Positions 56,549 to 58,348 of a stretch of DNA of 64,000 nt are shown here, one piece after another (position 1 is the stretch's first letter; each line of letters starts with the position of its first letter). Made by a program: the position numbers and the translations under genes. The notes under the pieces are model-generated. The model saw only the letters and a list, made by a program, of their open reading frames with translations. It had not been told where the DNA came from and ran no database searches. The stretch lies in the sequence record MN871440.1. One strand, 5' to 3'.

Positions 56549-58348
56549 TTATGATCCGAAAATAGTCATATCTCGGTTGTCTACCTCATATGTATTTATG
56601 CCGTCATCAATAATGGCACCAATCATGAAGTCATCGAGCATTTCTTCCATTTCTGCTTGGAATACGTCGGCACCGACGTTTCTCGAAGCATCAATAAAAT
56701 CACCGAATCGCTCTTGTGTTGTCAGATACGCAAATATACACAGCGACATAACCAAATCGTCATGAAAACCGTCTTGTGCAGCCCAACTAACACCCTTTTC
56801 TACAAACGTTCTAAACTCTTGAATTGTGCCTTTGTGTTTCACAATCAACTTATCTTTTTCGATTAAGTCTTTTAGAGTTGAACATCCAACAGCTTTGGTT
56901 GATTTAGTCTGTTTCATACCGAGATCTTTACTTGAGTCAACGATTACGTTTTCATATTCAAGATCAATAAACAAAGACTTAGCCACCATGTTACCTATAC
57001 TATTTAGCTCTATATAAACCCACGCATTATTATATTCCATACAATATCTCATAATAACGCTTGGCAATAGCAGTGGTGAAATCTTGTTCGAATGATACAC
57101 CGCAACCTGTTTATATGGATAAACGGTAACATCGATTATTTGCATGGTGCTATAATCTTGTCCACGACCTTCGGCAGGGTCAACGGTTGCAACATATTTG
57201 TGTCCTTCGATTGGTCTCTCAATTTGATAGAAACAATCATCTGGAATAACCTCGGTCCACCCCATCTTAGACAATTTAAATCCGTTGATAAGAGTACCAG
57301 ACGTTCCCATGAAACGGCAGCAATTATGTGTTAGAATTCCGTTGGCATAGAAAATGTTGCCACCATCAACGTCCCGAATGTCGTATAAATCAATGCGCTC
57401 GTTTATTACATCTTTATTGATTATTTCAATATCTTGACCGTCCAAAGGAACAAGCATACCAATCTCAACATCTTCGGCATACAAACAATACTGAATCTTG
57501 GTAACTGGATGAACAAGAACGAAAATGTGTTTATCGCTTGTCTCAAGTGTGAGTCCATTTTTCATTTCAAACTTGATGTATCGGTCATGACTTACCTTTT
57601 CAATGCTGCCGATAGCTCTGTATCCAGAAGGAGTTTTGATCTTAATAGAACTCTCGCTGTACGTCGGAAGAGGAGCAAAGCTATTTCGTTTCAGACATTT
57701 GATAAGCGCATTGTGCACCGCTATTTTGGTGCAATCTTTAGCATGAGTTTCCTGATACCAGTTACTGAATTGTCTCTCCGGAGGAGACATCATTCCACTT
57801 CTCGGACAACGTTTCAATTCGTATGTGTTGATGTTTTCGTAATACATTTTGCCAAGATGTTGAGTGTCGATTTTAATACAGTTACGACTCGGGGTTTTCC
57901 CTTTTCTGTTCATAGATTGTTTCCTTTTGGTTTCTTCCGAGAGTCCACAGCGTTTCACAGAATAACTATTGTTTGCTTTTCTAGTAGAAACGATTTTATT
58001 GATCGTTTCCTCTGTGTGTTTTTTGCCTTTCATCCCATTATGTTTCACTTTCTGCTTCTCAACATCAAAGTATGAATCATTGAGATAGTTATCCCATTTG
58101 TAAACTCTTTTATTTACTTTGGACTCCCAGATCAAAGCCGACTCGGCAGTTTTGAATGTCTTTCGTATTTCAACGTCAAAGTCATCCTTGCCGTACTTCT
58201 CGATTAAATCATGAACTGCTTTGCTACTTGTGAAATATGTAGACCACAAACACGATGGATTTGCGTCTTTAATTGCGTATTTCACACCATAATAATGCTT
58301 ATTCTCGGTCTTGTTTGTTACGCGATACGCGAACGGTATGTATTCCAC
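56549..58348 (-). CDS. 17: fusion ORF: GIY-YIG homing endonuclease + C-intein + terminase large subunit C-extein (nuclease domain)
   Basis: AYRVTN..YYGVKY and NUMOD3-like GKKHTEET; intein end [12 protein letters not shown] at 57323/57322; extein [18 protein letters not shown]. Confidence 0.92.
57323..57660 (-). mobile_element. C-terminal fragment of split intein (most of Hint domain)
   Basis: [17 protein letters not shown] (block B TxxH)..[13 protein letters not shown]; left boundary approximate. Confidence 0.9.
57700..58348 (-). mobile_element. Seg-like GIY-YIG homing endonuclease moiety
   Basis: [25 protein letters not shown], conserved E (WESK) and N (YLN), NUMOD3-type repeats; boundary approximate. 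Confidence 0.85.

Follow-up and report, generated by a model that had tools for sequence, protein, structure and literature searches.

How does a homing endonuclease come to share one reading frame with half of an intein and part of an essential terminase? Cycles of association and dissociation are assumed for inteins and homing endonucleases, but intermediates are rarely seen. The question is raised by gene 17, which encodes the large terminase subunit TerL, in the 64,000-nucleotide (nt) window that we analyzed from sequence record MN871440.1; all positions below are coordinates of this window, in which gene 17 lies on the minus strand. A 3.3-kb query region shares 99.9-100% identity with four phages of Aeromonas (Straboviridae, Angelvirus), namely AsFcp_4, AsFcp_1, AsFcp_2 and PX29, and we refer to the locus by the last of these names. 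Its flanking parts are 82-85% identical to phages Aeh1, Ah1, avDM12-TAAL and phiAS5. The first three of these align over about 66% of the query and lack its middle; the phiAS5 DNA alignment covers 24% of the query, and the C-extein is contiguous there by tblastn. We propose that PX29 gene 17 is quite probably a fractured gene, in which a TerL-type split intein lies between QQEH and C and a Seg-type GIY-YIG endonuclease sits at the split point, fused to the C-terminal intein half (IntC).

Gene 17B (56549..58348, minus strand) is a single open reading frame (ORF) of 599 amino acids (aa), read from aa 1 to 599 without internal stop in both the ORF listing and the translation. In order, it encodes an endonuclease of the Seg-type GIY-YIG class (aa 1-226), a linker of 8 aa, IntC (aa 235-342) and the TerL C-extein from Cys343. 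Pfam and PHROGs (homing endonuclease and terminase) and the GenBank annotation are in line with this content. The interval 57323..58348 corresponds exactly to codons 1-342, from the start codon through the terminal Asn of the intein. The linker at the junction, LPTYSESS (aa 227-234; 57647..57670, minus strand), contains no stop and no ATG, GTG or TTG, and its predicted local distance difference test score (pLDDT) is below 50 at aa 227-233. A first, sequence-only reading of this DNA had described one ORF running from endonuclease through IntC to C-extein, and this is what we observe, in five records. It had also estimated the endonuclease at about 215 aa; the domain is there, but homology to free-standing relatives of 231-241 aa puts its size at about 226 aa.

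The whole of 17B is recovered as one tblastn segment over residues 1-599 in five GenBank records from four phages (AsFcp_1, AsFcp_2, AsFcp_4 and two records of PX29), which stem from different laboratories, at least two, and different years. The same fusion occurs in a metagenomic relative of only 61% identity over endonuclease plus IntC. The endonuclease-IntC fusion is thus real, conserved, old and stable. That a missed base conceals a stop or a start between endonuclease and IntC, as a 1-nt frame difference precisely at the junction of a 1.4-kb metagenomic contig (L011) might lead one to suspect, has a negligible probability and was rejected, since the five records are identical or nearly so and fused relatives come from separate samples (contigs L006/L007, L008/L009, L010 and L043). 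The sequence-only reading would have taken a stop at the junction in relatives as the sign of an artefact. Relatives at about 50% identity do have a stop at the end of the endonuclease and a separate IntC start, but they represent a different evolutionary state and have no bearing on the matter.

Gene 17A encodes the terminase's N-terminal part. Its ORF (58318..59562, minus strand; 414 aa from the first possible start) comprises the TerL N-terminal domain followed by a 33-aa N-terminal intein half (IntN), and overlaps 17B by 31 nt. The N-extein (58420..59547, minus strand), which is the ATPase domain and ends ...AFQQEH, matches Pfam Terminase_6N (1.2e-39) and is colinear with Aeh1 gp17. Its start is ambiguous: the ORF listing gives TTG 59562 and GenBank ATG 59538, and a further ATG at 59547 stands at a good distance after AAGGAG. 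The last is the most likely start; it would give a spliced product of 633 aa, the length of Aeh1 gp17. IntN (58321..58419, minus strand; stop codon 58318-58320) begins with Cys1 at 58419, aa 382 of 17A, immediately after QQEH. It is a short block-A IntN, as in the TerL split-intein family; its Cys1 is conserved in nine loci at the same TerL site, and a GenBank note records it.

IntC (57323..57646, minus strand) carries block B as SDKH (aa 271-274) and ends with THN (aa 340-342, the terminal His-Asn being aa 341-342) just before Cys343; it has the long form typical of the atypical TerL family, and its limits are supported by alignment. In a phmmer search, residues 233-343 hit chain B of PDB 6DSL with an E value of 1.4e-8; this chain is the IntC of Cat, an engineered consensus intein of the atypical split TerL type. 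The same chain is the top Foldseek match of an AlphaFold model of aa 1-343 (E 7.9e-8, template modelling score 0.71, 29% identity), all other matches being inteins or Hint domains. From these similarities, the PX29 intein belongs to the atypical (short-IntN, S1-type) family of TerL split inteins represented by Cat, AceL and GOS-TerL. The C-extein (56549..57322, minus strand), which holds the nuclease domain and the stop codon, starts with Cys343 as the putative +1 nucleophile, matches Terminase_6C over aa 388-557 (7.7e-23) and is 90% identical to Aeh1 gp17. When the N-extein (381 aa) and C-extein (257 aa) are joined in silico, the product aligns end to end with the uninterrupted Aeh1 gp17 (633 aa) at 90% identity, and the extein junction is free of gaps (QQEH-CCRFMG in PX29, QQEH-LCRFMG in Aeh1). 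As the +1 residue is Leu in the intein-less Aeh1 allele, Cys+1 is specific to the intein-bearing allele.

Cys1, the block-B S/T-x-x-H motif, the terminal His-Asn and Cys+1 are kept in all nine homologous loci, at an IntC identity of only 27-60%. We may also imagine that no splicing takes place and that the two TerL pieces act as a non-covalent complex held by the intein halves. Split phage enzymes can indeed work unligated, as illustrated by the split NrdA of phage Aeh1, which has no intein (Edgell review, PMC2988022). However, the splicing residues would hardly have survived in nine such divergent lineages, Cys+1 arrived with the intein, and a 40-kDa endonuclease-intein lump would be hard to accommodate inside the TerL motor. 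Furthermore, the homologous GOS-TerL, AceL-TerL and Cat inteins do trans-splice in vitro (review PMC11766414). We therefore regard a complex without splicing as very improbable.

From homology to these inteins and endonucleases, the following course of docking, splicing, release and cleavage may be predicted for PX29. Translation of 17B would start at GTG 58348, coupled to that of 17A through a Shine-Dalgarno (SD) sequence in the last IntN codons. The 33-aa IntN on 17A would then dock into the incomplete Hint fold of IntC, and protein trans-splicing would ligate the exteins to yield TerL, 633-638 aa long according to the 17A start. Splicing would also free a 342-aa endonuclease-IntC protein with IntN still bound, in effect a two-piece bifunctional intein with GIY-YIG at the S1 loop. 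This endonuclease would presumably cut gene 17 alleles that lack the intein or the endonuclease in co-infecting relatives, Aeh1 for instance, and repair would copy the cassette into the cut allele, thereby achieving homing. In the model, IntC begins at a surface loop that joins both parts in contiguous homologues, so that an N-terminal domain at this place should leave IntN docking unobstructed.

We looked for relatives by searching 1.84 billion representative proteins with aa 1-345, by word-indexed searches, by tblastn on phage genomes and by contig retrieval. The same TerL site is found in a series of states. (a) The site is empty in Aeh1 and its kin and in L044, an L010-like phage that reads QEHL-CNFLG; Aeh1, Ah1, avDM12 and phiAS5 lack the whole element, which is the presence/absence polymorphism characteristic of homing endonucleases. 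(b) Contiguous mini-intein homologues occur in proteins P0040, P0070 and P0132. (c) The gene is fractured, with a free-standing endonuclease of 231-237 aa, in Yersinia phage MHG19, Serratia phage 92A1, Providencia phage PSTRCR_127 and L012; IntC is read here from an ATG of its own, which overlaps the endonuclease stop by 11-14 nt in another frame. (d) The full endonuclease is fused to IntC in PX29 and in the 596-aa protein P0002 on contigs L006 and L007, the relative of 61% identity mentioned above. (e) P0004, on L008/L009, is fused but has lost the catalytic core through an in-frame deletion: its initial 21 residues remain, and the sequence then resumes in the NUMOD region. (f) In P0139 on L010 and P0152 on L043, nothing of the endonuclease is left but its final 85-90 residues, fused to IntC. 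On L043 a 34-aa endonuclease stub (MNWKPYTYRV...YYGVKY...) is closed by a stop in another frame, and the ORF restarts at a NUMOD3 Met homologous to Met146 of PX29. (g) Vibrio phage EniLVp02 has a split intein without endonuclease, and the start of its IntC ORF lies within the IntN tail, in the customary position.

A tblastn search of 50,697 phage records with the endonuclease tail plus IntC finds the fused form only in the PX29/AsFcp cluster. Metagenomic collections add four fused lineages (L006/7, L008/9, L010 and L043). A scan of IMG/VR with an IntC profile returned PX29 itself and distant inteins but no additional fusion, and a metagenome scan with junction peptides returned the L006 contig again and nothing else. 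L011 is left unclassified. In this short, low-coverage contig (ENA ERZ28614452 scaffold_116386, 1186-1235), the endonuclease frame reads ...RPTYSDINSVGISRL and then a stop, and IntC (IQILTPSGYQDF...) runs on in the +1 frame without a start codon. Its junction is fusion-like apart from the 1-nt frame difference, which may reflect an error of sequencing, a frameshift site or a pseudogene.

The way in which 17B is translated bears on how much of the fusion is actually made. The SD sequence of 17B, GGAGG (58353..58357, minus strand), lies within the IntN codons for VEEL, 4 nt 5' of GTG 58348. Its pairing energy at this start is -9.3 kcal/mol, to be compared with medians of -5.1 for the 61 long ORFs of the window and -0.4 for random positions. 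It is encoded by a conserved IntN motif, (V/L/I)EEL(W/Y) (58349-58375, minus strand). An SD inside IntN, with an overlap of 23-32 nt, is also seen in L002-L006, L008, L010 and L012; the arrangement is constant in nine loci, whether endonuclease or IntC follows, and we therefore consider the two halves to be translationally coupled. No site for the late-promoter consensus of T4, TATAAATA, occurs within gene 17 or in its vicinity, and the two matches in the window are as many as chance would give.

Inside 17B, no ATG, GTG or TTG occurs between codons 211 and 262, hence none at the boundary between endonuclease and IntC, so that any IntC produced must carry at least a portion of the endonuclease. 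The ATGs nearest to IntC are codons 186 and 187 (57793 and 57790), 48-49 codons before Ile235. Their SD energies of -3.0 and -3.3 kcal/mol fall within the range of random positions (10th percentile -3.5) and no SD is recognizable. This agrees with the first reading, which saw the nearest ATGs about 50 codons before the Hint segment without a clear ribosome binding site, but which overlooked Met146 (57913). The latter is preceded by AAGGAA, a site of median strength (-5.6 kcal/mol) that arises from Lys/Arg codons of the NUMOD3 motif.

We may thus hypothesize that IntC-TerL-C is produced mostly by internal initiation at Met146, or less likely at Met186/187, with the full-length fusion a minor product and the nuclease in effect separate. 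The SD at Met146 is close to the median of real genes in the window. On L043, the tail-IntC-TerL-C ORF begins at the homologous NUMOD3 Met, the sole start available there, with an SD of -5.8, and L010 likewise starts a tail-only ORF. Yet the closest fused relative, L006, has no Met at this position and its nearest candidates range from +0.4 to -3.2; the SD-like purines at Met146 are a by-product of E/K/R-rich NUMOD3 codons. The SD of the GTG start is by far the strongest and is conserved in PX29, L006 and L008. Predominant internal initiation is in our view unlikely, and even then IntC would keep at least 89 endonuclease residues, so that the fusion would stand.

Is the endonuclease part of the fusion a working enzyme? 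Its catalytic GIY-YIG domain (aa 1-95; 58064..58348, minus strand) matches Pfam SegE_GIY-YIG (PF19835) over aa 2-77 with 33.8 bits, above the cut-off of 25. A NUMOD3-type linker containing Met146 follows (aa 96-160; 57869..58063, minus strand), with a NUMOD3 match over aa 108-145 that scores 19.0 bits, just under the cut-off of 20.4. The C-terminal helical domain (aa 161-226; 57671..57868, minus strand) ends in KCLKRNSF and is homologous to the tails of free-standing endonucleases; it has no Pfam or PDB match and is presumed to bind DNA. The AlphaFold2 (AF2) model contains a GIY-YIG-like alpha/beta unit of moderate confidence (aa 1-77), a low-confidence region (aa 78-157), a three-helix domain (aa 162-221, block pLDDT 75-90), a disordered linker (aa 227-233) and then the Hint strands, with block means of 84-94 over most of the length of IntC. 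All ten positions that are invariant in a 33-member family alignment are present in PX29, including Y8, Y19, Y20, G21, E75 and N90.

Comparison of PX29 with L006 shows where the fusion is constrained. Nei-Gojobori dS is saturated (pS about 1) and gives no true dN/dS, and we therefore used identities at codon positions 1/2/3. These are 0.74/0.80/0.29 for the GIY-YIG domain, 0.67/0.72/0.31 for the NUMOD segment, 0.59/0.68/0.30 for the C-terminal tail of the endonuclease, 0.66/0.79/0.34 for IntC and 0.85/0.89/0.39 for the C-extein. The catalytic domain is the best-conserved part outside the exteins (68% aa identity; pN 0.22, against 0.26 for IntC), and the endonuclease protein as a whole is conserved about as strongly as the splicing domain while silent sites are saturated. 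This pattern of substitutions shows purifying selection on the endonuclease. It is good evidence for a nuclease that worked during most of the time since PX29 and L006 diverged, and moderate evidence for one that still works in PX29.

Several points weigh against reading PX29 gene 17 as a working homing cassette. Splicing and cleavage in PX29 are predicted from homology, as are nuclease activity and its target, and the start codons given are likewise predictions. An open frame alone is no evidence for a working endonuclease, because a stop would also remove the essential IntC-TerL-C downstream. Since a sequence search and a 33-sequence profile found no PDB homologue of the GIY-YIG domain, for which AF2 confidence is only moderate, its catalytic residues are judged by family invariance only. 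The nuclease domain has been lost in L008, L010 and L043 while the fusion persists. Met146, with its median-strength SD and its homology to the L043 start, may give rise to a shorter, nuclease-free tail-IntC-TerL-C isoform, which is possibly the dominant one. Finally, the endonuclease and intein trees presented below are too weakly resolved to tell fused from free-standing ancestry.

Another view takes the PX29 nuclease as a relic passenger, catalytically dead and kept for the ribosome binding site, start codon and reading frame that it provides to IntC-TerL-C. Nonsense or frameshift decay being lethal in a fusion, the frame would stay open without any nuclease function, and L008, with its deleted core, together with the tail-only L010 and L043, proves that such a relic state exists. 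However, PX29 retains every residue invariant in the 33 family members, and its catalytic domain is better conserved relative to L006 than any other non-extein part, at saturated third positions. A dead nuclease in PX29 thus seems improbable to us, and an active, fused homing endonuclease remains our preferred interpretation.

Trees provide some information on the history of the fusion. Gene-17 endonucleases form one clade with respect to other Seg-like proteins (support 92/95). Within this clade, a free-standing group is moderately supported (86/81) and the fused forms make up an unresolved grade. In the intein tree, split forms stand apart from contiguous homologues (95/95) and L010, which has the tail only, groups with EniLVp02, which has no endonuclease (88/88); a tree in which the fused forms are monophyletic is not rejected (approximately unbiased test, p = 0.066). 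A motif just before the junction, C-L-x-R-x-S-F, is present in all fused forms and absent from free-standing ones, which suggests that the fusion arose once. Identities in extein and intein do not agree with each other: between L010 and L012 they amount to 74% in the extein and 35% in IntC, which points to movement of the cassette between phages.

That the fusion may be an intermediate between a free-standing endonuclease gene and a bifunctional intein had been put forward in the sequence-only reading. The idea fits both the series of states described here and step IIIa of the Dassa et al. 2009 model (PMC2677866), a step that was proposed, not observed, and of which the fusion represents one half. 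The same reading saw release of the endonuclease in step with terminase maturation as a tie between homing and an essential late function; any adaptive meaning of such timing is conjectural, and its interpretation as a whole is supported in part. States (e), (f) and (g) further hint at how the fused form could turn into an atypical split intein devoid of endonuclease, via successive deletions that keep the start embedded in IntN; in (e), the deletions are in frame. The tail remnant appears to be constrained: L010 4001-4255 and L043 4001-4270 are 60% identical, with a pN/pS of 0.35, compared to values of 0.26 in IntC and 0.24 in the extein. Even without a nuclease, the tail thus seems to be under purifying selection in L010 and L043.

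More tentatively, and with some doubt, we may ask whether endonuclease-IntC together with IntN makes up a two-piece bifunctional intein, the first with GIY-YIG, in which the helical tail has become a needed partner of IntC, be it for folding, solubility, docking or DNA tethering. Such a partnership would explain why the tail survives loss of the nuclease, why it is under purifying selection and why C-L-x-R-x-S-F is found in fused forms only. If this were true, the fusion would be a stable, selected architecture that blocks nonsense and frameshift decay of a selfish gene, and not a passing intermediate.

A single TerL site therefore displays every state: empty, contiguous mini-intein, fractured by an endonuclease, fused, fused with a decayed nuclease, and split without endonuclease. 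To an intein specialist, the fusion will be unsurprising in principle; its value is that of a rare intermediate that can be cultivated and is experimentally tractable. PX29 is a cultivable phage in the fused state, with a close, intein-less relative, Aeh1, whose host range partly overlaps its own, and the predicted route of endonuclease gain and loss and of atypical split-intein origin is therefore directly testable. With regard to the decay of selfish genes, a fusion permits in-frame deletions only, as in L008 and L010, the exception being L043 with its out-of-frame stub and internal Met restart. For protein engineering, a splicing PX29 intein would show that an atypical IntC tolerates, or even benefits from, an N-terminal fusion of 234 residues. 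According to Petrov 2010 (PMC2993671), PX29 came from New Orleans sewage with A. salmonicida 95-65 as host, about 95% of its ORFs are common to Aeh1, and the host ranges of the two phages overlap in part.

The endonuclease-IntC architecture is not new: it is on record in the 2010 GenBank annotation of PX29. In GU396103, 17A is labeled "contains putative N-intein" and 17B "contains putative GIY-YIG endonuclease and C-intein", and the depositors had therefore recognized the architecture at that time. Our literature searches found no paper describing the fusion, and it is not mentioned in excerpts of two 2010 Virology Journal reviews on T4-related genomes and mobile elements (Petrov, Edgell).

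Other putative mobile elements were noticed in these genomes. On L006 (ENA ERZ1755817 NODE_254, 1967-2228; about window 58990, minus strand), 17A is interrupted by some 305 nt between ...IHNLPR and QLGKTT (Walker A). This insert, absent in PX29, reaches 37.3 bits (E 5e-8) against RF00028, the model of group I introns, and so falls short of the gathering score, which is 50. On L010 (Logan SRR27204706 contig, 129-5353), three split inteins with a short IntN, located at Walker A, at Walker B and at the PX29 site, divide gene 17 into four pieces. At the first site, a 530-aa ORF comprises N-extein, IntN and, in frame, about 340 aa with a MUG113/T5orf172 nuclease-type domain (Pfam 7.8e-6); by its domain order, this is a mirror-image fusion, with a putative endonuclease-like domain at the C-terminus of IntN. 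The second site has a free-standing 305-aa DUF723 ORF between the intein halves. In Delftia phage PhiW-14 (GQ357915; L041 1941-2806), the annotated gp17 starts inside an IntC-like segment with 26% identity to PX29 IntC, and about 500 nt between gp16 and gp17 are unannotated, which suggests that the annotation misses a split intein at another TerL site, an N-terminal one. Finally, the window itself contains a CxxC-rich ORF of 204 aa at 61053-61667 (plus strand), on the strand opposite to the surrounding structural genes. It matches the PHROGs 'endonuclease' family phrog_681 (1.9e-11) and HNH endonuclease phrog_559 (6e-6), with a weak Pfam CapR match, and is probably another free-standing endonuclease-like gene.

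How does PX29 compare with known systems? Dassa et al. 2009 (PMC2677866) described fractured genes with a free-standing endonuclease ORF and knew of no GIY-YIG domain within inteins. The claim that the PX29 fusion departs from the usual layout of fractured genes is well founded in this respect. Their GOS 'Terminase' locus is the closest of these cases, with a gp17-like terminase, a split intein broken at the same unusual point, a long IntC (122 residues, with every motif except N1) and an endonuclease gene between the halves, all on one strand. PX29 likewise has N-extein-IntN, endonuclease and IntC-C-extein in order on one strand. In contrast, the endonucleases in the fractured genes of Dassa et al. 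are free-standing, with their own stop, as also in L002-L004 and L012, whereas that of PX29 is in frame with IntC.

Compared with the GOS-TerL, AceL-TerL and Cat (PDB 6DSL) inteins, PX29 shares the short IntN (25-37 aa), the IntC of about 104-115 aa and Cys+1. These IntC were studied as stand-alone polypeptides, whereas the IntC of PX29 has a 234-aa N-terminal endonuclease extension. The loci of MHG19, 92A1, PSTRCR_127 and L012 have the same TerL site, homologous IntN, IntC and endonuclease (one clade) and the same coupling by an SD in IntN. They differ in that the endonuclease ends in a stop and IntC has an ORF and ATG of its own, with the 11-14 nt overlap.

The free-standing Seg GIY-YIG endonucleases of T4-like phages and the genes split by endonucleases, such as Aeh1 nrdA/mobE and phage 25 gene 43, also resemble PX29 in several ways. 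The nuclease is a Seg-type GIY-YIG with a NUMOD3 module, which in PX29 is a candidate just under the cut-off; it resides inside a conserved, essential gene of a T4-like Aeromonas phage, and close relatives show presence/absence polymorphism for it. In PX29, unlike in these systems, an intein is predicted to repair the break at the protein level and the endonuclease is no separate gene. Bifunctional inteins such as PI-SceI carry a LAGLIDADG or HNH domain inside the Hint fold. As in these, endonuclease and splicing domain of PX29 form one polypeptide and are predicted to be excised together from the host protein. However, the PX29 endonuclease is of the GIY-YIG class and lies at the S1 loop after block A, not at the canonical site between blocks B and F. 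The PX29 intein is also still split: the endonuclease stands between block A on 17A and block B on 17B, and is covalently joined to one half only, IntC.

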